From positions 7,897,166 to 7,961,165 of the forward strand of contig OZ199839.1 of assembly GCA_964304625.1 (NCBI GenBank): a DNA stretch of 64,000 nt, in the 5' to 3' direction. The notes under the pieces were generated by a model. It saw only the letters and a program-made list of their open reading frames with translations, had not been told where the DNA came from and made no database searches. The stretch comes from Kudoa neothunni (taxonomy: Eukaryota > Animalia > Cnidaria). The translations under genes were made by a program, and so were the position numbers. Shown here piece by piece: positions 1 through 46,020 of this stretch (its first letter is position 1; every line of letters starts with the position of its first letter).

Positions 1-3000
1 TAATATATTCAATAAGATTGTTGGTAAAATGCAATTTGTCATAATTTAAAATATTCATATATATTTGTAAAATTTTTTAATTTCATAAAGTTATACAGAG
101 ATTATTGTCGCGTATTATCTAATAAATCATTATTGCCCTCATTTATAATTCAAAGATATATATAATTCAATAGAAAAAAATATATATATTAGAACTCAAT
201 TGGTTCTATATTTTCTTAAAAGTTTTAAATATTTCGGCATATTTAATAGTTTTGAACATGCGAAGTTACTGACAATATTGGCGGGCATGCACAAAAAAAA
301 TTGATCGATGTAAGCATATTGATTATATTAGGCCATTGCTTGAAAATAAACTAAAAAATAAAATTCCTACACATTTTAAAGATAAAATGAAATTTTTACA
401 TCATTTTGATACATACAAATAGGTTTTTTATCTAATTTTCATTTTCATTGTAATTTGATGATAATGACTGACAGAAATTTTTTTATCATTTTCATCACTT
501 AATCTAACCATTTTTACGTAATATATTATTTTCGGACGGAAAAAAAAAGATTCGATATAAAAGAGTTAATAGGAATTGTTGGGACTAAAAATGGGTATCG
601 CAGAGGCGTTATACCATTTAATACTCAAAATATTTATAGAGACAGCCATTATTAATTAATAATTGTCATTAAAAGGTAAACGAGACATAAAAGAAAGGAT
701 TTAGTTTTACTTTTATAAATAAATGTAAAATAACTAATCCTAAAATATTTACAAACAAATGTATGTAACCATTTCTATTGAGTTTAATGGCCTTGAATAA
801 TAAACGCTTCAAACAACGCTATGTTCGCAACAAATCACACTGTGTAAACAACCTTTATTGAATTTTGATGTTGCTTAATTACCCCTTACGTAGAAGATAG
901 ATAATGCAATTTGGACAATATTTAATTTTATCATGAAACAAGAAAATTTTCATTTATTCTACGGATACATAATGTTTGAAACCTTATGAGAAAGAAATTC
1001 TTAAAAAAATCAAAACCAATAAAACGCCGATCATTAATCATTAAATCGATAAAAAGGTAAAGTTATAAAGCACAAACAGCTTTCTTCGAAGTATTTTTCT
1101 AGCGAGGCCAAATGAGTAACGATAGTTGATTATTGGTTCCAATAGGGTTGGGGTTATTTTGAGAGTGAGACAACATTTTTTTTCTTAAAATAACGTTAGG
1201 CTGGTGTAACTAAGAAACATAATTATACCTTATCAATGGTCGACGATATAGACAAATGATTGCAAGCAAGGAGCAAATGTTTCTTCTCAATCTCGCTTAG
1301 GTCATCTGGAAGATTAAGCTGGCTGATTTGGGGAGCATTTTTAAATTTACTTTAAAAATAAATTCTAAAAATGGAATAATAACATGAAGCATATTACTAT
1401 AATTTTTGATGAAAATGATCGTAAAGATCCTGACGATACATCGAGGTTTGGGCGAAACGCTCCAATTCGATTTTGTCACATTCTGAATCTATTCATCCAA
1501 ATGTTGTACATGTTAAAAATAAATTTAAAGGTTAAATTAAATTTCAGTTTACCAGTCACTCCAAACATTTTTTTAGTAAAATCCTTCAAATGCTTATTAC
1601 AGACTCCCATAAGTCTAGACAAACATCCATCAAGCTACATGAAAATTATTCTATCAAACATACGCATCGAGAGCTTTGAGTTCGTTGCACACGCCTACAT
1701 TGTTAGGAGAAAGTTCTAGACATTTGTTCAGATGAGATCTTGCTTTATCAAAATCTATTATGGATTTATATGCCTAATAATTTTTGAGAATTAAAACCCC
1801 TTCACCACAACAACAAATTACCTGACCAAGACGAAAGTGAGCTTTCATATTATCAGAGTCCATACTGAGAACCTAAAGTATATTTACACAATGTTCAACC
1901 AATATAACTAAAGGGGAAAAATATAATCATCAATTATTGATTATTTCAATAGAGCTTTAAGATATACTGTGTAATTTTTTAGATCAACGATTATTACATA
2001 GCTTGAATCATTGGTTCCCAATCTTTTTATTTTTAATAAAGCCCTATCTCTAGGTTACGTCTATTGTTACCAAGCTAATTTTAGCCGAAGTAATAAAATA
2101 CTACTTTTATAACATTGTAGGCCATACTCATGATACGTAAAAATGATTTTTTAAATATACTTAATGTAAATACATAGTTATATAAAATACAATATTAATA
2201 TGAAAATAATATGATTTTTCTTGCTTTGAACAAATATTTATGGAATTACTTCGTTAAATCGTAACCAGATCAATTAACCATCTATGTATGTATTAAATTC
2301 ACAGACATATTTTTTGTTTTTCACATTTTTCAAGCAAAATAAACTTAAAAACGTTTCCTTAAACACCAAATTCTCCATCAGTAGATTAAGATAATGATTT
2401 TTTGTTGAAATACACGAATAAAATTATAATTGGTTTAATCAAAAGAATAGCAATGTGTAGCATTATAATTTTTGTATTATCTATGATTGAAATCAAATCA
2501 TTTTTTTCATCGAGAATTTTATCACAAAATTCTGCATTTAAAATATAGCGTGAGGTCAGCTGTCCTATCTATTTTTAACTGGTTGTTGGATAAGTCATTT
2601 ATTTAGGAATAATCACTCTAAAATAGTTTTCTAGCAGGTCAAATATTCAAAAATAAAGTCAATCCAGACAAAGAAATGCCTAGCAAAAAAAACTTTAGGC
2701 CTCGTACAACCGTCTAAAAAAGAATATTGATAAAATTATCACATTATGATCTTCGTTTCTATAAATTTGTTTTTTATAAAGCTCTCATATTTTCATTAGA
2801 TTCAATTATATTGAGCCAAACTCCCCTAATTTTTAAATTGAGAGAGAATACTGCGTTGAAGATTTGAAAAAAATTTAAACTACGAACTAGCACTAAAACA
2901 CGAGTATTCTTGTAATATGAAATTTTCTTTTTACAATGAATAATTATTATATATAAAAAATTGAAAACTACAAAATTTGGTTAAAAACCACTTCAATAAG

Positions 3001-3559
3001 CTAAAAAGCTATATTCAAAGGTTTAAATTAATTTTTTGATTAAAAAATAATCAAATATTCCATTTAAATATATGTATTCTAATAAAAATATATAAAGTGG
3101 AAGGATATCAACTAATTATTAATTTATTTCCCAAATAATAAATGAAAAAATACATATAAATAGATCCAAAATGCTAAACAGAATGACATACTGCATAAAA
3201 ATTAATCATAATAATAAAATTTAAGAAAAAATATTAATTATTCATTAAGAAATAGCACAAAGAAATATATGAGGTGGAAGTTTTATAGCAGGAAGAAACA
3301 ATTATTGTAATCCTTTGCAGAAAATATATAAATTATCAAATTTTGAATGGAAGTTAAACAAATTTAAAAAAATAATATTTGAGCTATATAAAAAACGTTT
3401 AAATCAAGGAAATATTATTTTTTGTTAACTTTTATAAAATGTTTCAATACAAAAGTTGAAATATTATAAATACACCAACAGTTACGAATTAAGTATATTT
3501 AAGTATAAAATTATCAACAATATCCTCTTATAAATTAATTAATAATTTCCTACGATGAC

Positions 3560-4090
3560 TGCACACTTTAATGGTACAATTATTGTTGGATCCCTAGAAA
3601 ATGGAGATCTGCACAAGAAGATTTCCTCTAGTGAAAAATACATTTAATTCAACACGAAAAGGAAAACGCTTTTCCTTCAAAAATCAACAAAGTTCAGAAG
3701 GAGTTAAATCTAGAATTATTTCAAAATTTAACCTCTTCTTAATGCATATATTTTTTAAGATGGTCTTCAAAATAATATAAAAATTCTCATCCCACATGAC
3801 TTGCAATGATGTGGGATATACTTGTTTCCCGATCAATACGCTAATTCATACAATGCCATTAATGTTTGTTTATACAAAACAAATATTAATGGCAAGCAGG
3901 GCTATTGTTAATCAATTTATAATTACAGTTATGTTGAACTGAGCAATAGGTAATTTTATATTGATCATCTCCAATTAAATAGCTTTGCAAAATGTTTCTT
4001 CACTTTTATATACACCAGACTTGAACTGCTCAAGTGTAAATTGGGTGATAGAGCATTAAAGTCCCATGAATAACATCCACCGAATTCATT
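3560..4090 (-). pseudogene. Highly decayed reverse transcriptase remnant (Penelope/non-LTR-like)
   Basis: Minus-strand fragments SWDFNALSP (like SFDxxSLYT) and YKQT..NGI...ISHIIAS (like YxQxxGxAMGSPLSPIIAN), broken by stops and frameshifts. Confidence 0.3.
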
Positions 4091-7119: not shown

Positions 7120-9534
7120 GAATTTCTATATGTATGTTCACTCTTTATAACATTAGCTGCACAGTGGATATTGTGTAAATTCCATCTTATTTAATAAATA
7201 AAATTTTAACGATAATTATTGCATTTTAAAATTTTTAAAAATATAAGATGAATATATTTTGTAATAAAATAATTTAAGAAATTATTAAATTTCAAAAAAA
7301 GAATAAATATCAGCTCGATATTATGACATATAACATTTTACAGCTTATTTTAAATGTATTATACAAAATAAAAATTATCATTTTTTAAAAAATAATTTTA
7401 AATTAAGATTAATCGGATAAAATTAAATCAATATAATTTACGTCATTTTCAAAACAATGGTTAAATCAACTTTTTATGACAAATCGCCATTACGTTAATC
7501 TGATTAATCTGATTAATCTTACTAATCTTACTTTTGTGGTATAATATTTAGCACTCCCGGTCCTAGATGAGTTTCTGCCTCACCACTAAACGGACGTTTT
7601 CTTTAATAATTAGATGTTATTTTATTTTCTAGCATTAAAATACCTTAATATGTTTCATTAAAAAAATTAAACTTAACTATTCTAAATATGAGTACATTTT
7701 AAATTGAATATCTATTATAGACATTAGCGCAAACTGCCCAGCGTTTCTTGGGAAGATTTCGCATAGATACACTTCTTAATAACATTCACAAAATAAATTG
7801 AAATCGTGAATTAACCCATAGAAGAAAAATAACTAAAAAATTTTAAGTATCATACATTAACGATTTGGATTGACCAAATTTAATTATGATCAATTCTGTG
7901 AAGGTACGTATCAATCCCGGCGTTCATTTAAAAATTTCATGACTCGGCACTAATGCTAAATAATTTAAGATCCGCGTCATTATTTTCTACATTCCCGAAT
8001 TATTTAAATTACCTTAAAGTGTTGTCTAAAATGTTATTTTTTGGCCTGTGGATTTTTCAAAGCCGACTCTGGTCCGACTTAGAAAATATTTGTCATTATT
8101 TTCTGGGGAGGTAAAAAAATAGAAATGGAAGAAAATTTACGATAATTGATTTTTAGTGCTCAAATTATTATCCCTTGTCCTGACATGAACATTAATGCAT
8201 TATTTCTCATAAACACTTTTAGATCGAGTCAATATCAACATAAATAATTAAAATAATAAGATGAAGTAAAAGTACAACCATCTGAATTGAATTTAATCAC
8301 AGAAAGTTAAACTTAGCTGGCGACTTCAATAAAATCTACAGACAGGGTGTTTGTATTATAATACTTAAATAAATATAATTTTAACGTTTTCCACCAATTA
8401 GTTATTCATGAAACGTATATAGATTTTTTATCTTATCTAAAACAATCAATAGAACCTTCGAATGTGTTTATCATGTCAAATACGTTAAAACTCCACAAAT
8501 AAGGAGTGTATCTGCGCAAACTCTCAAATATACATGCCAACATTATATAAAAAGTCAGATAACAACAGTTAATCAACATTTGATATAGCAAATAAGGAGG
8601 AAAATTAACTTCAACCGACCATCAGCAGGCCATAAGTAGGTGTTAATCCTATTGTTGAACTAAAATAATCCGTTGAACAAATTTGAATCGACGAATTCAC
8701 CATTTCTAAACTCTTTTGGAAACATTCAATAGTGTGAAAACGATTGAAAGATTTTTATAAACATTATGATTTTTAAAAAATTTCGACGCACATGCGTACT
8801 TGCTGACTCACACATGGACACTTCAGTGTTATATGTATAGTGGATAATAGATAGTGGATTGAAAATAGAATATTAATGGGATATATTTCACATATTTTTA
8901 TTTTTTACAATATAAAAGCTGAATATACACCAATATTTTTAATTATATCCTTGGAGGGACTAACAAAAAACAGTTTGGAGACCCATAGCCCAGATAATTG
9001 CAATCTGTTCTATGAGGTTAGCTATTGAAAAGCTTGTAATTGGTATTTCGCATGCATGTGCGATGACCAATTGCTCTGGGTATGCAGCGAAGGGATTATC
9101 ATATAGAAGAAAGCGTTTCTGAAATTTCGACTATTTTTTACAACATAAAATGGTCGCAATATATTTTTATCGTTAAATACGCGTAAATAGGGGTGAATAT
9201 TTTAGCTTTAATATAATTATCTAGAGAATTAATTGATTTAAAAACAATAAAAATATTTTAATCAACAAAATTTCGTTATGTATGTTAAATAAGCGACGTA
9301 TATTTCAATGTTCAAAATTATTTTCGAGATATTCTCACCATAAACCCAATTATTTATAACCATCATTTATATGTTAATTAAGATGCCTAATTTTATTTTA
9401 TAAATTAATTAATTAACTTTAACGTTGTGACCGCATTTAATAAAATTTAACAAACGACTATATAGGAAAAAGTTTGTCAATATTTTCCGGTTGTCTTTGA
9501 CTATTTTATTATGAATTTCAATGCTTAAATTCTT

Positions 9535-9920
9535 CTAAGTGTCAAATAGCAGATCAATTCTGGTAGATCCAAACGTTTTCAATAATATTTGATTATGATA
9601 TTGTTTTGCAGATCGCTCATATTTATTCAAAGTAGAATATCCTTCTTTCAACCAGATATTTTCATTAAGCGCCGAAAATAAATAACAGGAAAAGGAAATA
9701 AAAAAGTTTTTTGTTGTAGTACATCCACACAACCATTCTTTCCTCTCGTACCATATACTATGAAAGGTACGATTAATTTTCTCTCCTTTCTATTATTTAA
9801 GTTCATAAAGCTTTGGTGTTGGTCTACAATTTGTTGTGATTCTCATCTTTTCTTCGTAGGGAAGTTTTAAAAAGTGTTTGGGATAGTGATTATCCATGTT
9901 TAAAAGCAGCATGATAAAAT
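9535..9920 (-). pseudogene. Possible very old Merlin-type transposase remnant
   Basis: Weak resemblance of WLCG..KNFFI and IWLKEGYSTL to the WVFGG..FF and IxSDxWxxYxxL motifs. No termini found. Confidence 0.2.
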
Positions 9921-10663
9921 CAAAAAACACTTCAACAGATAATCAAAATAGAGATTAGGAATAATTTATTTGTAAATTGCATTTTCTCCGAAATATTACC
10001 TAATTTTATCGCTTCGGAGACACTGATTAAAATTTGGATATTTAATAATTCAAAAAATAACTAGAATTTCGCGTATGAGAGATGCAAATAGGCTCCCCTT
10101 ACTGTACATTGTCACGTGACTATGTAGGGTATGTCGAACTTAGTTTGCACATCCTGGCTAGTACAAAAAATAGAGATGCGTGGAATCGCACCGCACGTAC
10201 CAGTTACGCGCGTCTACCTTTACCTAAATATTTGAAACTTTTTTATTTTATATATATTTTTATAATATGTATATATACACTCACAGTTGAAATTTTTTTA
10301 TTGATATCTATTGGAAGTTGGCAAATCAAGCATCGCTGACTTTAATGTGCCAATGCTTTACACACCTGGACCTATGAAAATTATTCTATGTCGAGTTATT
10401 TCGGACTATTATTGATTCTGATTTATATATTTAAACTAATACTGAGATAAATGCGAATCATTTTTTTATTTGCGTAAAATATTGATTCAAACATTATTTA
10501 TTTTTGAGTCGGTAATATCCCATTAATTCTCATGTTACACCCTGCAATGTAGGTACAAAAATTTTCCAACCCAACCTATTCCAGGGTACACAGTGCATAC
10601 TCCTTCCCCGGGCACGTGACTGGTATTTCGTACATGCACGTATTCGTCTGAGATAATTTAAGA

Positions 10664-11532
10664 AAGGGGCTGTCAAAGATTTTAACTGACGGGCCAAATT
10701 TTTGATTTTCATCAGCTTTAAGGGCCGGATTAAAAAGTTTTCTTCGAAATACAGTTATAAAAATGAACCAAAAATACTACAAGTTGAAAAAAAATAATGA
10801 ATGTGAACCAGTAAACAGATTCCTGTGGGAGGATTTAGTATATTTCAATTTTGAGGCTTCAGTGAGATTACGAACCATAATCCATTGTGTGTTGTATAAT
10901 TCAAAAAATCATGAACTAGGTTAAATTTGTGGTTGTAATGAAGAATAACATTTTTTTCAAGCATAAAATTCATAGTTTATTTATATTATCATAGTAAAAA
11001 GTTGTGTAGATGCTAATAAGGTGTTCATTTGTTGTCTCACATATTTTTATTATAGCTTTATTAACCACCCACACTTTAGAGATAGGTCCATAATTTTGTA
11101 AAATACTGTACATGATGCTAGAAAATATCTAAGGAATGACGATTATTGCTTTATCGTTTAAAATTTTTAGTGTCCAATCAATTAAACTCAATCCGATTAA
11201 AAAATAGAGCTAATCTATATAATTTTTAGGTTTAAATACTTAATAACTTTAAACTATTAGAAGCATAGGAGTCGAATAAACCTTGAAACATGTATCTTAT
11301 CGATTTGTACGTTTTACGTTCAGAATCTTACTATACTAGTGTATTGATGTTCTCTTCTGTTTCAATTAGGATAAAATAAAAACGTTAAAGGGATTAAATG
11401 AGTAATTTAAGTTAACATTCATCTACCAAAGTAATTTATTGATAGTGTTCAAACAATTCAACACAATTTCGCGTGTGCAAGCGCCTTCGAATGTTAGGCT
11501 GGACACCACGGGTCGTAGTTTGGCGACCCCTG
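10664..11532. mobile_element. Non-autonomous hAT (Buster/Charlie-type) element
   Basis: Ends aAGGGGCTGTCAAA... and ...TTTGGCGACCCCTG. Subterminal GGGCC motifs. 8-bp TSD with central TA, ATTTAAGA / ATTTAAGG. Confidence 0.6.
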
Positions 11533-38922: not shown

Positions 38923-40004
38923 TAGACAGGGATGGAAAAGAATTAATTGCGATTATTACACTTACAAAAGAGATTCATTTAATCGTTAAAAATCCTTTGC
39001 TGTCGGTTTAGTCTTCTGGTTATAATAAAAATTTAACTGTTACAGAATATTTTTTAAATTTGAACGTTAAATTTCTATTTTTGGCGAACAACCAGTGAAT
39101 GCTTCAATTATTCCATGAAATGACGATAAAATTGTAATATATTTATTTTTTCCACACTGGGAGAATCTCAATAAACTGCGTTGTTATGTTCTTATGTTGT
39201 CAACGAGAAAATTCGGGACAGTTTTTATCTCCATCGCGCCATCTAAGAATTCAAAATTCCTAGGTTATCTAATATCGAAATAAGTTTGAAGCACATTTTA
39301 CTTAATTACGTTCGCTTATACTTCAAATTTTATTCGCTTCATTCATATTCGACGTATTTGTTGGTTTATCACTATTGGGTGGCTGCCCCATTTTGGGGAA
39401 TAATATTAAGGGTGATGAAATAACCTCAATGCCTGCCTTTAGCGCGGTATATTGACGAATAATATAAACCGATAGTTAATTTGCGTCGTTATAAAAAACA
39501 AGTGTTTTTATGGCTGCAAAAATTAATTTTATTAATAATAACACAAATACACATATCGACAGTCATCTTATATATATATATATATATTTAAGGACTATAA
39601 GGATAAAGTTTTTTTATACCAGCTTCGTTTAAAACATCTATAAAATCAATTCAATTAAATAAAATAAGTTATGTAGAGTTCAAAGTAAGGGTAATATATT
39701 TCAGCGTTTAAAACATTTTAGTATGTGACGATTGGGTGAATAAAAAGGGAATTCATGTTGCGTTTGATTGTGAAAAGTGTTCTCTAATCACTCCTATATT
39801 GAGAATATTAAATATAGAATAATATCAGTTCATCTTTAATATTTATGGAAAAATAAAATTTCTACTATAATTTTCATAAATCATAAATTTTACTTAGGTA
39901 AATATTAAGATATAGATGTTGTGGCGCACTGAAGACAATATAAAAAATATATATTTGTAAATAAATAATTCAATAAATTATTTTTTATAAAAATTGTGAT
40001 GATG

Positions 40005-43000
40005 TCAGAAACCATCTGGAATACCGCCTTTACGATAGTCGCAAACCGCCTCATAACTACCATCCTCCCTTCTAGCGATTGCTTGGATTACACCCATTAA
40101 TGCGTGTTGCTGACCTACACAAATCAGAATAAAAATAATTAGATATTGTCTTGTTGATCAGCCATTTAAATGATAAATTACCTGATACTTCATAGGTTTC
40201 ATTGGTGACCCTCTTGTGTAGATGACTGTACATCAGGGGAACAAAAGTTTTTGGCATGGTGTTTTCATAAACGATTGTAGGAGGGAACAATTGACAATGA
40301 ATACGAGGTCTTGTGACAGCAGTTGTGATATTGTCTTTGAGAAATAGATAGCTTGCCATTGTCTAAATGGTCCAATATAACACATTCCAATTACATCAAA
40401 CAATCACTTACCGATGCGATAGCTGAGGGAATAAAGAATCCTCCTGCCGCCCCAATAACAAGTTCTACATCACCAGTACTCTTGTTGGTCATAATAATAG
40501 GGGCGACTTTGGACATTGGTCTTTTGCCGCTTACTTGAGTATCAGGTGTGAATTTGTAGATTTTTGGCCAGTAAGTTGAAAAATCGGATATTTCGTTGTT
40601 GTAGATAAATCCAAGCTCCCTAGAGACATACTTTGATCCAAAACTAAACCTGATTTTAATTGTTATTGCAGTCAAGTGACATTTACTATGCATTTATAGA
40701 CGATGTGATTGAGCAAGCATCGCCTTCCGGGCCCAATGCAGACATATGAGACGTTCCATGGGCCAAAGATACGTTTATTTTGTTGTACGGTCCATAGTAA
40801 TCCACAATATGAGAAACGTTATCGATTTTATTAAACATATTCTGCACAACAGTGGGATCCATCATATACTTTAATACCTTTAGTTATCAGAAAATTAAAA
40901 AAGTACTTAAACTCTATTAAGTAATTGTTTAATTTGATAAAACACATTTATTAGCATTTGAGGCCAAAAATTTTTATCAAATTAAAATATATACTTCCTT
41001 GACGTGAGGTGTAAATTTTGGGTCGCCTAGAAAAGTTGAAGGGGCATAAGCGAATTTCATAGCTTCCACCATTTGATGATAAAATTGGCCCGGATTGGAT
41101 TTTAAGGAATTTAAACTCCAATTAAATTCTAAAAAAATATTTTCACCATTAAATGATCTATGCAAAAAATTACTATCCATAATTTTAAGCATGAGAGCAA
41201 CTGTTGCACTACTGGCAGGAGGTTTAACACCCAAGAATTTCATTCCAGCTACTTCAGTCACCAGCGCGGGATGCACACGAGCTTTATATCCTGCTAAATC
41301 ATCCTTGGTGATTATACCTCCGATAATGTTAACATCCGATACGATTCTGTCCGCTATATCTCCTCTTTTGGTCAATGTATAAAAACATTACACTCACTGC
41401 TTGATTACCTATAGAAAATATCTGCTCCTCCGGAGTCGGCAATTTTTTGGTAGGTGTCTGCTAATTTTTTCCTTCTCAGTAAAAAACCTTCCCTAACCTT
41501 CATTCCGTTCGGTGCAAACAGTTCCCTATCCTAATGTAGTGATTTATTCAAGAAAAGTACCACTACCTGAGACCTAAGTTGGTGTATATGAAATCTTGCT
41601 TTTTTTCAATTGCCAATGCCAGCATTTCGTGAACACGGAATCCATACCTTGCTAATTTAATGGCTGGTTCAAACAACATTCTCCAAGGTAATTTCCCCAT
41701 TCTTTTGTGAGCCGCTTCAAGACCCTTCAATACACCTGGAATCAAAATAGTGGTTCCTTGTGTTACTCCTAGGTGTGATGTAGCTAACTCATCGATTTCA
41801 TAAAAATATTACTTCCTGATTTGTTGTAATGACTTGGTAGGGATTCTCTAAAGTCCACAGTAAAGGCCTCTCCTAATTTATTTATATTTCGTATTAATAA
41901 AAGATGAAGGGTAAAAAAACTTTAAATACCCTTCTTTTTATCGTAGGCAAGAAGGAATCCGCCACCTCCCAGTCCAGTTGAATGAGAATTAACAACTTCC
42001 ACACATAAATGGACGGCAATTGCAGCATCTACTGAATTTCCTCCTTTTTTAAAAATATTCTTCCCTATTGTTGAACACAAATGGTGATCGCTAGCTACGG
42101 CTGCTTTTTGAAAAACATTGTGCTTGGTCGAAGTGAAAAAATCAGTTTGGTGAAGTTTGAAACGGTCTAAATCACACATAATTTCAGTTGGAAACGCTCA
42201 TTTTCAGAATACCATTAGCTAAATTTAAGTTATCCCGTTTACATGCAGAAACACAGTCAGCATCCAAGCAATCCTGACAGCCGTCCATTACATAGGAATT
42301 TGGAGGCATTACATATATAGGAGGAGGGGGAGGGGGTGGTGGTACGGTTGGAGGTGGTTCGCAAGGCGCGCTGCAATAAACCACCGAAGGAGGAGGTTGA
42401 ACAGGGCAGGGGCATGGGCATGGTATATACATTGGACACGGAACTGGGCAGTTAACGCACACAACATTTGGGCAACATGGAACCGCAGGTGGAACTGATG
42501 TAGAATTCGAAGGAGGTAAGGGCGATATTGTGACAGGTGTTACTGTGGTGTTTTTCTCGTGACTAGGGCTCCAGTAAGCGTGTGTAGGTCTAGTAACAAT
42601 GGGAGGAGTTGTACTGACAGTTGTTGGAGGTGTGACTGGGGTCGGTGGTGTTGTGGACTGCGTTGTAGTAGTTTCATTTTCTTTTTTCTTTTCTGCTGTT
42701 TTTTGGTTAGTATTGACCTTGGTTTCAGTTCTTGTGTTTGCAAAAGTCTTGACTTTGGCAGCAGCTGATGAATTGGATTTCGCATTGCTAGATGTGGATA
42801 TTTTGGTTTTGGTTCTGGTTTTGCTGAATGATTGTGATTCACTGCTGGAACTGCTGTTGCCCTTGGCTTTAGATCCGCCTAGTCCCAGAGCAGCCGATGC
42901 AGATTTTGCATTTTCCAAGGCCACTCCATTTGATTTCTTGCTCCCCAATTTATCCTTTGCAGATTCACAGTCTTTGTGCTTTACTCGTTTTGTAATAAAT

Positions 43001-43129
43001 GAATTTATACGATTTTTTTCTCTACAAAATATTTACATTAACTTTAACCCAATAATCATACTTTGATCTATATCTGCATTCACCTATTATTATTATTATT
43101 GAAAATATTACAAATACGAGGTTCCTCAT
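40005..43129 (-). CDS. Secreted gamma-glutamyl transpeptidase with a Ser/Lys/Thr-rich and Cys/polyproline N-terminal extension (nematocyst-type GGT candidate)
   Basis: Signal MRNLVFVIFSIIIIIGEC. Introns 43022-43061 and 42167-42212 join the extension in frame to AAVASDH..GGNSVDAAIA..STGLGGGGF, DFRE, IPGVLKGL..GKLPW..LFEPAI.LA, HGTSHMS (catalytic Thr), FGSK, NNEISDFS, GAAGG, RIHCQLFP, DYRKGGIPDGF*. Confidence 0.92.
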
Positions 43130-44068
43130 TTAGCAAAAAAAAACTTTTTCAATAGGATGTGAACTTAAAAATGTGTCAGCGTCCATACAGTTAATGACAT
43201 CGTTCCCATGGTGATACGATTGTGAGAGTATTAAATCAGAGTACAGCTTGAATCAAATCTCTACTTTAGATATTTTTTACAAAACATCACGATAAATGAA
43301 TATATACAATTAAAATAATTTGTGCCTAAATAATATTAACTAATAATTGCAATGAAGTATTTTATTTTATTCTTTCCTTTTTATCTACCGTAGAATGAAG
43401 AAATTTTTTAATTTATCCTTTTCATTAAACATAAATTACTGTTACTTTTATTTTCAAGATAACATAACAATTTATAAAAAATACTAAAACTGTAATTAAT
43501 GATAAGAAACTTAATTGAATTAAGAATTCGTACATAACACGTGATTATAACTTTAACAATTAACCTCAAATTTATTATAATAAAATATTTAAATTAATTA
43601 TTGTTAAAGCCCATTGGGAAAAATGTGGTCGTTTATGTATTAAAATTAGTAAAACAAGTTTCTTTTAAATAAATTTTTAAAAAGTTATTGTATTCTAATC
43701 TCCCTATAAAATTAAAAAAAATTCTATTTGTTAATTTTAATGATATTAACTTCCTGTGAAATAATCGCTACCTTTTTATATAAGGTGTGTGCACATTGAT
43801 ATTAAATTAGAGGTAGCATATATTTCTCCTCTAAATCGTAAAATTTTAAAGGTCTAAAATTCCAAAATAAGTTTTACCTCACGTGTTATGAAATTATTTA
43901 AAATTAATATATACTCGAAGAGAATTTGTAGATCGTCTAGCATTTGGAAACTTTAAATAACGGAAAAAGTAAAATCACTTAAAAATTCTAATTGTAATTC
44001 ATTTCTATTATATCTAAATTTTACTTTTATCTGCAAAGGAATGAAAAAGAATTTATTGACATGTTCTG

Positions 44069-44072
<4 letters not shown>

Positions 44073-44102
<30 letters not shown>
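44073..44102. repeat. (TA)n microsatellite
   Basis: About 15 TA units. Similar tracts near 21682-21710, 39569-39586, 47817-47836, 56762-56788, 58357-58373 and 59837-59863. Confidence 0.9.
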
Positions 44103-44106
<4 letters not shown>

Positions 44107-46020
44107 TCTTGTCTGTCAGTGTGTGTTTGCAGCAATACTCCTTCACCACGGAGAAACTTTTTTTAATACAACTTTTAGTCTGCATTTGAATAGACGATAC
44201 CATTAATAAAAATCGTTTGTTCACTTAGAATTATAAATATAATCAATACAGCGGCCAGAAGTAAGGAATTTTCCGGTTGTTTACATGAATTACCAGATTA
44301 AAAGGTACCCGCATAACATTGATGTCTGTTTACTTCAGAGTGATGCTCAATAAAAATGAAGTTTTACTCGCAATATACTAGGTAATTCCGTTAATTTTAT
44401 TATAGAATGTTTCAAAAATGTTACATATACCTGTTTGGAGTAATTTTAAGACAGATAATGCCATTAGAGTCATATTTACAAGAGATGTAACATTTCCCTT
44501 AAGATTTTAAGCATAAAAATATTTAGGATGTATTTTCACTTTTCAAGTGTTATGGATATAGTTAAGCGAAAAAGATTATGATAATTATAAACAATACACA
44601 TAATTTGAGATTATAAGTTGTTGCGACGTTGAAATAATTTGGGTCTCTATACGTATTCTAAAAACGATGTAAGATATATGTAGAGTTTTCAAATAATTGA
44701 ATATTTGTTATAACTTTTTGATTCAAAATTTCTTTTTATCCAATATATCGATTGAGATTGAAACTACATTTGTCTTTCGATAAGTATTTACACATTTTTT
44801 GATTTACCTAAACTTTCTTGTAAAACAGCTGGCATAACTAACTCAATAAGTTTCTACATTTGATGAGATAATTTTGTAAATAATGATTAAGTTCTTAATA
44901 ACCTCATTATTCCATATTTCCAGGCCTTAAGATTAATATTCAAATCAATATAAAATTTTCTTTTCGCTATAAATAATTCATTATGATATAAAAGCTGCCT
45001 GAAAACATGTGACACCCCATGTTATACGTAATTTAAGAATTTATATTCATGATTACTTTTGCACAAAATACAGTCCCCTCTCAATACGTGTCATGTAAGT
45101 TAATAAGAAATTATTAGCCTGTTCGATTTAACCGACATTTTAACATAGTCTTCGTTAATTTAAGAATAGTTCAATTCGAAGAAATTTTTTTTAAGGAAAT
45201 CAAACACTACGTTTATTTTTAAAAGAGTGCACTCGATCAAGAGAACCAGTTGATATCCAATCTTTACGGTTATTTTTCAAACCAAAAACACCTTCACATT
45301 TTAGATTTAATCGTATTTTGATAATTAAATTTGTATACTTTTGTACCAGTAATTATTTTTGTTAAAAAAGGTTGCATTTATTTAAAAATCGGGAAATTAT
45401 GTTTAAATAGTGAATACGAAAGATACCACTCACAGCTTATTAAAACCTCATTAACATCCTTTATAATATTGCAAAAAGGAGTAACAATTAATATTTTTAT
45501 TTCTGATCCATCTTAAGTTTATTTTATTTTTCTTATCGTTTATAGACTAATACTAAATTTTATAACTAGAAGGATTAATTTTTATCGCAAAATTTTAGAA
45601 AAATCTGAAAGTCCTATTTAAGTTATTTAATGAATTTTTTTTATAAATAAATTAACATTATCGTTAATTACATTTCATCGTTCATCAAATTAAGGTCATT
45701 ATATTTTTGGTTATTAATTTGTAAAATAAACTTAAAAATACTCATTTATTTCCTTCAATATTTCTATTTTTATTTGAATGGAAAGTGCGCGCATAATTTT
45801 ATTTTTCTAAATCATCACATTGCAAAAATAATGACAAGCTTTAAAATTCATAAATAAAATATAAGAAATAAAATTTACAGGGCTTAACGTGCTAATTAGA
45901 TTAAATCCTTCCTATAAGTTATCCATTCAAAAATAAAACTAAAAGTTAAAATTTTCCATCACATAGTGTCAGACAAAGTTGTGAATTAGCGCTAGTTATT
46001 AATATTTAAAGTTAAACGTT

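Follow-up and report, generated by a model that had tools for sequence, protein, structure and literature searches.

The pressure of roughly 150 bar inside cnidarian capsules has its source in poly-gamma-glutamate. To our knowledge, how capsules make and confine this polymer is unsettled, with gamma-glutamyl transpeptidase (GGT) as the usual suspect. Here we describe a GGT gene of Kudoa neothunni (Cnidaria), a myxozoan parasite of fish, that lies on the minus strand, from 43129 to 40005, of a 64,000-nucleotide stretch of contig OZ199839.1 (positions 7,897,166 to 7,961,165, assembly GCA_964304625.1; hereafter the window, whose numbering is used unless stated). The gene has 11 exons, and every element described in an initial annotation of this DNA is found where it had been placed. 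The closest described systems are the capsule wall proteins, which combine a signal peptide, a propeptide ending in Lys-Arg (KR), Cys-rich and polyproline segments, and disulfide cross-linking (PMC6910907), and the published nematocyst-specific GGT, NSP7 (Shpirer et al. 2018; PMC6134521). NSP7 has a single GGT domain and carries a membrane anchor in all cnidarians except Myxozoa (PMC6134521). It is the only capsule GGT characterised in the literature that we searched.

The locus is best explained as one 11-exon gene for a secretory precursor in which a Cys/Pro-rich leader precedes GGT, with a product that would be routed to the capsule, cut at dibasic sites and linked to the wall. We put the probability of this reading at roughly 70%. 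The predicted precursor consists, in order, of a signal peptide, a short pro-region to Lys-Arg, a leader of ~250 residues, a second Lys-Arg and a complete GGT domain. Added up, the exons come to 2577 nt, or 858 codons, by arithmetic only. Splice sites were set exon by exon, guided by three natural orthologs, and searches were run with single exons or natural database proteins as queries. The start codon at 43129, with an in-frame TAA directly upstream, opens MRNLVFVIFSIIIII with a hydrophobic core of 12 residues. Exon 1 (43062..43129) supplies a signal-like peptide in place of a GGT1-type membrane anchor, as the initial annotation had it, and the orthologs likewise start with signal-like peptides. 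The annotated propeptide ending ..NSFITKR is also present. Across species, the dibasic sites that follow the pro-region and immediately precede the enzyme are conserved.

The leader is encoded by exon 2 (42213..43021), in a frame that covers 42213-43017 on the minus strand (268 codons, 15 Cys in total). From the ..NSFITKR end of the pro-region it runs through a Ser/Lys/Ala-rich stretch with the basic core ESQSFSKTRTKTKISTSSNAKSNSSAAAKVKTFANTRTETKVNTN, a Thr/Pro stalk that includes TRPTHAYWSPS, and a Cys/Pro module, to the boundary CKR (..CVSACKR DNLNLAN) and a phase-1 donor. The Thr/Pro stalk, 14 Cys, P8 run and KR before the enzyme are all as first described. The 14 Cys lie inside 79 residues around the P8 run, and the fifteenth lies outside the module. 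At the local base composition, 282 open codons in a row would arise by chance with a probability of about 2e-10, and the leader exon is 45% GC compared with 23% GC upstream; from these two observations we conclude that the leader frame is not a chance one.

The leader is joined to the enzyme by intron 2 (42167..42212), a 46-nt phase-1 intron with the borders GTATTC..TTTAG. The codon split across it (g+ac) continues in frame into DRFKLHQTDFF..AAVASD..HLCVEVVNSHSTGLGGGGF, which places a conserved linker (..QTDFFTS..) and the first part of the GGT domain in exon 3 (41930..42166). This exon matches PF01019 from profile position 2 (positions 2-44), and the in-frame junction predicted in the initial annotation is upheld by alignment. 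Comparison with other myxozoans gives the same picture. Queried with the leader exon, a word search returned T. kitauei RF11_12131 (E 1e-37) and an open reading frame (ORF) on a Logan contig. In T. kitauei a GGT lies on the same strand 0.6 kb downstream of RF11_12131, and in Henneguya salminicola the leader ORF is followed by a 74-nt gap and then, again on the same strand, by the GGT exon. In Myxobolus squamalis the depositors' own model (KAF1745193) is a single 764-aa protein of leader plus GGT, with which the window gene aligns end to end (47% identity in the leader, 37-68% in the GGT pieces).

The conserved position of the donor is a further argument for the splice. All five myxozoan sequences end the leader 7-15 codons after a conserved C-x(1,3)-C-K-R at a phase-1 G|GT donor, and the read-through tails past this donor are unrelated among them. 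A conserved Q-x-D-x-F-T-S begins the next exon, which in T. kitauei has stops and no start codon upstream. In T. kitauei, Henneguya and M. honghuensis the GGT is modelled separately, from a Met inside the conserved domain, and we therefore regard these models as truncated. As a note on public records, the models of T. kitauei (9683-11403), H. salminicola (2197-3743) and M. honghuensis (18075_MH_MC) have internal starts (MDAAIT.., MTQGD..) and miss the leader and part of the domain. A frame change in the H. salminicola exon after the leader (SGJC01003327, 1882-1935; ..VSQIEIYS to ..IVAADHYKCSE) is either an assembly indel or a sign of a damaged gene copy. Among proteins of 420-1337 aa, a word search queried with the M. 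squamalis leader returned only this protein itself and no transcript-derived myxozoan fusion; it says little, since the Hydra proteins were missed too. We conclude that leader and GGT are one gene and that the fusion is very likely real.

The leader is older than the Myxozoa. The Hydra proteins XP_065680176 (isoform X1) and XP_065657328 (isoform X3), of 839 and 843 aa, and Hydractinia XP_057299824 (isoform X1, 832 aa) all carry a homologous leader on an orthologous GGT. They are automatic RefSeq models, named 'glutathione hydrolase 1 proenzyme' in Hydra vulgaris. A tblastn search with a leader-bearing Hydra protein returned the window at 31% over about 200 leader residues. The hydrozoan proteins have the same order of parts, with a signal, a dibasic site, a basic core (ESQ-x-F..SSNA[KR]S..AAAKVK..NTET[KR]V) that aligns with that of the window, a Thr/Pro region, a Cys/Pro module, KR and then GGT. 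Their leaders differ in having 22-23 Cys at other spacings, in the lack of the myxozoan TRPTHAYWSPS, in a second KR (KRVHA) nearer the enzyme and, in Hydractinia, in that the leader can be skipped. Sanderia has the basic core, no Cys module and KK at the boundary, and anthozoan relatives are limited to a hydrophobic N-terminus and a dibasic site. With Hydra, Hydractinia and at least five myxozoans sharing it, the leader is placed by its sequence distribution in the common ancestor of Medusozoa and Myxozoa. The design is not a myxozoan novelty; hydrozoans share it. No description of it, or of the Hydra and Hydractinia proteins, appears in the literature searched; it is visible in the automatic annotations of these two genera and in that of M. 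squamalis. The Hydra isoforms are alike for ~410 N-terminal residues, through the leader and into the first part of the GGT domain, beyond which they run on into two distinct GGT bodies, a pattern that suggests tandem duplicates served by one leader.

The character of the leader was examined across eight species. The Ser/Lys/Ala-rich tract is present as the initial annotation described, but it is not filler: in the eight-species alignment, from Hydra to Myxozoa, no other part of the leader is as well conserved as this basic core. In most of the scored myxozoan leaders its alternating lysines bring the net charge to +8 over 45 residues. The core Cys spacing in Myxozoa reads C-x2-C-x3-C-x5-C-x-C-x-C-x10/11-C-x3-C. 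No Pfam family matched the leader, no look-alikes were found in the ESM Atlas, and a second copy was not found in the same genome, where the leader is unique. AlphaFold2, run on an eight-row alignment, returned a mean predicted local distance difference test (pLDDT) score of 45.9 and was confident only in the polyproline stretch. The model describes a conserved leader domain that is predicted to be disordered apart from its polyproline run.

These features bring the leader close to the Hydra minicollagens and CPP-1 (PMC6910907) without making it one of them. It shares with them a predicted signal peptide, a pro-region that ends at a dibasic site, polyproline (here P8) and Cys clusters predicted to be able to form intermolecular disulfides. 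It differs in being joined to an enzyme and in lacking two hallmarks: the eight leaders contain no run of four or more G-x-x repeats, and no match to the six-Cys cysteine-rich domain (CRD) CX3CX3CX3CX3CC, either strictly or with a loose spacing of 2-6. The term 'minicollagen-like' was accordingly rejected, while the suggestion that the Cys spacing is non-canonical and marks an undescribed module is supported.

The enzyme part is a whole-length match to PF01019, an N-terminal nucleophile (Ntn) hydrolase family. The scanned exon pieces cover profile positions 2-44 and 179-485 of 512, down to 40072. Three of them score 57-74 bits on their own (cut-off 27), and a genome-wide scan adds positions 65-159 at the locus. 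Exon 4 (41813..41872; ..FTVDFRESLPSHYNKSG) holds the Arg equivalent to Arg107 of human GGT1. The domain continues through exon 5 (41567..41768), exon 6 (41409..41525) and exon 7 (40995..41364; Pfam positions 179-287). Exon 8 (40687..40877) carries the autoprocessing and nucleophile Thr in ..AHG-T-SHMSALGPEGDA.., where G-T-SHMS aligns with the G-T-SH of orthologs, and exon 9 (40412..40643) carries the pocket, in which GAAGG aligns with the oxyanion Gly473 and Gly474 of human GGT1. Compared with human GGT1 (PDB 4gg2, 4gdx), the window gene has the Ntn-hydrolase core and keeps equivalents of Thr381, Asn401, Asp423, Ser451, Gly473 and Gly474. It differs in having a signal peptide and leader where GGT1 has a type II anchor, and in three substitutions: Ser452 is Lys and Asp422 is Ser, both in exon 9, and Thr399 is Ser, in exon 8. 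The Ser452 change to Lys or Arg is common to 36 members of the Medusozoa and Myxozoa clade and is not found in their anthozoan sisters, so it is a family trait and not a local mutation. By alignment, the catalytic core is intact and the glutamate pocket is modified. Exon 10 (40182..40362) contains ..RPRIHCQLFPPTIVYE.., a signature of the leader-bearing GGT clade, and exon 11 (40005..40114) ends ..DYRKGGIPDGF* at the stop.

To define the family, the 132-residue piece of exon 7 was searched against 1.84 billion representatives, and the best full-length hit then served as the query of a word search. Members come from Hydractinia, Rhopilema, Sanderia, Hydra, Clytia, many medusozoan transcripts, T. 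kitauei, Henneguya and M. squamalis. Besides Lys or Arg at position 452, all share NNEL/I-x-DFS-x-x-WP and RPR-x-HCQLFPPT. When a medusozoan member was compared with the K. neothunni genome, the window locus was the best match at 47-65% identity, and other GGT loci reached mostly 36-37%, with 49-51% only on short conserved pieces. In this genome the window gene is, on these comparisons, the only member of the leader-bearing GGT clade. A quick maximum-likelihood tree, built without NSP7 sequences, groups Myxozoa and Medusozoa in one clade (Shimodaira-Hasegawa-like approximate likelihood ratio test, SH-aLRT, 100), with an anthozoan clade as sister (100) and bilaterian GGT1/5 apart.

The initial annotation linked the gene to the reported nematocyst-specific GGT, and this link does not hold. 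The Kudoa iwatai NSP7 row of the published alignment (..LSYISRRKHV..ESFIYAESDFRKGGKPYGI; PMC6134521) matches a different locus of this genome, at C1:13.058-13.060 Mb (..LSYISRRIRVHQVESQIYAECDYRKGGRPYGD). The window gene ends ..ARREDGSYEAVCDYRKGG.. and lacks the C-terminal insertion of NSP7, and its identity with NSP7 was rejected on both counts. The two have in common that they are cnidarian GGTs tied to capsules, and both occur in polar-capsule proteomes, where the PMC8773148 tables list two GGT ortholog groups. They are nonetheless different paralogs: NSP7 keeps Ser-Ser and NNEMDDFS, has the insertion and consists of a single GGT domain. Judged by alignment, the window gene belongs to a second, cnidarian-restricted GGT clade that is distinct from NSP7. 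The ortholog of NSP7 in this genome, at C1:13058452-13060253, has the C-terminal insertion, and its peptide is close but not identical to K. iwatai NSP7, which points to a Kudoa-like myxozoan other than K. iwatai.

The introns span 40-117 nt, and all nine GGT-side introns have GTA donors and (T/A)AG acceptors. Intron 1 has two in-frame solutions. In model A, the alternative, exon 1 ends at 43084 and the intron (43083-43020; 64 nt, GTGAAT..GAG) is in phase 1. In model B the intron (43022..43061; 40 nt, GTATGA..TAG) is in phase 2, exon 1 reads MRNLVFVIFSIIIIIG/ECRYRSK and the exon junction reads ..IIIIIGECRYRSK-EKNR... We favour model B because it follows the same GTA..(T/A)AG pattern as the nine other introns, because phase 2 is also found in the first introns of T. 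kitauei (22 nt), Henneguya (28 nt) and the Logan contig (21 nt), because it retains a G-E-C that is also present in T. kitauei, and because it leaves a plausible predicted signal cleavage site at I-I-G. Skipping of the leader exon to give a short isoform was considered and set aside, as it is possible only under model A, the less likely model. If the models are right, the first introns of T. kitauei (8095-8122), the Logan contig (~436-456) and Henneguya (~939-966) are very short spliceosomal introns of 21-28 nt. On the plus strand, a 155-codon frame at 42599-43066 overlaps the leader exon in antisense; it mirrors the low complexity of the coding strand and is no gene candidate. A (TA)n microsatellite occupies 44065-44112 in the 23%-GC DNA that precedes the gene.

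The link to the capsule comes through orthologs. In PMC8773148, gamma-glutamyl transpeptidase is reported among 34 orthologs common to the nematocyst proteomes of four myxozoans. Its M. honghuensis entry 18075_MH_MC, with about 13 peptides per replicate, has the clade signatures HLCVEIVNCHSTGLGGGGF and RPRIHCQLFPPTVV, and on that basis we take it to be the ortholog of the window gene; the tables assign the same group to C. shasta, M. wulii and T. kitauei as well. In M. bejeranoi, GGT transcripts rise with minicollagens at sporulation, the paralog not being identified. The proposal of a polar-capsule enzyme thus remains plausible by way of the M. honghuensis ortholog, although the enzyme is not NSP7.

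Given the usual make-up of capsule wall proteins (PMC6910907) and the presence in Myxozoa of the capsule- or nematocyst-specific subtilisin-like convertase NSP6 (PMC6134521), we infer the following course. The protein would enter the secretory route to the capsule primordium, where a proprotein convertase would cut it at the dibasic sites. The Cys/Pro module and polyproline would then attach either the leader or the enzyme as a whole to the disulfide-bonded wall, and the enzyme would act on gamma-glutamyl compounds at the capsule.

Several observations weigh against this course. No read on 39600-44600 came from the three metatranscriptomic runs and the one contig set that share the species label; these count as no test, as the label is probably that of the host, which fits a parasite assembled from host data, and the splice rests on comparison. 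The T. kitauei record annotates leader and GGT as two genes, and the in-frame ATG at 42179, within intron 2, could in principle start a leaderless GGT. The Hydractinia isoform X2 (593 aa) skips exactly the leader, so the enzyme as such can do without it. Contaminants may be present in capsule preparations. The leader to which a disulfide tether may be ascribed, by composition and analogy, has no canonical CRD. Finally, no leader motifs or peptides occur in the part of the PMC8773148 tables examined, so that the mature capsule form may lack the leader. The same blank is not informative in so far as the models searched were without a leader: proteome searches that used the truncated T. kitauei, H. 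salminicola and M. honghuensis models had no means of detecting it.

The alternative that survives best is a polyprotein, in which the leader is a structural or matrix polypeptide and cleavage at CKR frees a soluble matrix enzyme that is not tethered. The boundary KR is the most conserved feature of the module end in all leaders with a Cys/Pro module (it is KK in the Cys-less Sanderia), and the capsule-proteome entries were matched with leaderless models. The strongly cationic core, moreover, could serve as a counter-ion or binder of poly-gamma-glutamate. We regard this as possible, but less probable than the reading given first.

It is unlikely that the fused gene is real and yet encodes no capsule protein, being instead a general secreted or surface GGT for glutathione or amino-acid salvage with a mucin-like disordered stalk, whose presence in capsule proteomes is carry-over. 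GGTs are common as ecto-enzymes, the leader is predicted to be disordered, and Hydractinia has a leaderless isoform. Such a view has to contend with an ortholog group found in the capsule preparations of four myxozoans, in M. honghuensis with about 13 peptides, and with GGT transcripts that rise with minicollagen at sporulation in M. bejeranoi, whichever paralog these represent. It must also contend with a clade limited to cnidarians and with a signal, KR propeptide, Cys/Pro and polyproline that are the usual make-up of a capsule wall protein (PMC6910907).

Very improbable, lastly, are two separate genes, namely a secreted Cys/Pro-rich protein whose unspliced frame closes at 42186-42184, with a TGA nine codons beyond the putative donor, and a GGT starting from ATG 42179: the T. 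kitauei annotation and the missing RNA reads would fit them, but they would have no intergenic space for a promoter or poly(A) site, the GGT would have neither signal nor anchor where all orthologs have one, M. squamalis, Hydra and Hydractinia have annotated models of the fused form, the donor and not the read-through tail is conserved, and the T. kitauei and Henneguya models that suggest a separate GGT are truncated, with no ATG and with stops upstream in the T. kitauei exon.

The precursor reading that we prefer bears on how capsules handle their matrix. Speculatively, the alternating-lysine core could bind poly-gamma-glutamate. A bolder and doubtful extension sees in the leader an undescribed domain for capsule targeting and tethering, older than the split of Medusozoa and Myxozoa. 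Its Lys core would bind poly-gamma-glutamate or chondroitin as a polyanionic matrix, disulfides would tie its Cys/Pro module to the wall, and the GGT that it positions, with Lys in place of Ser452, would build or remodel poly-gamma-glutamate at the interface of wall and matrix. What the finding offers is a second cnidarian-restricted GGT clade, with an altered glutamate pocket and a conserved leader of ~250 residues without family assignment. This clade is a testable handle, and Hydra and Hydractinia are tractable systems in which the leader-bearing GGT may be studied.

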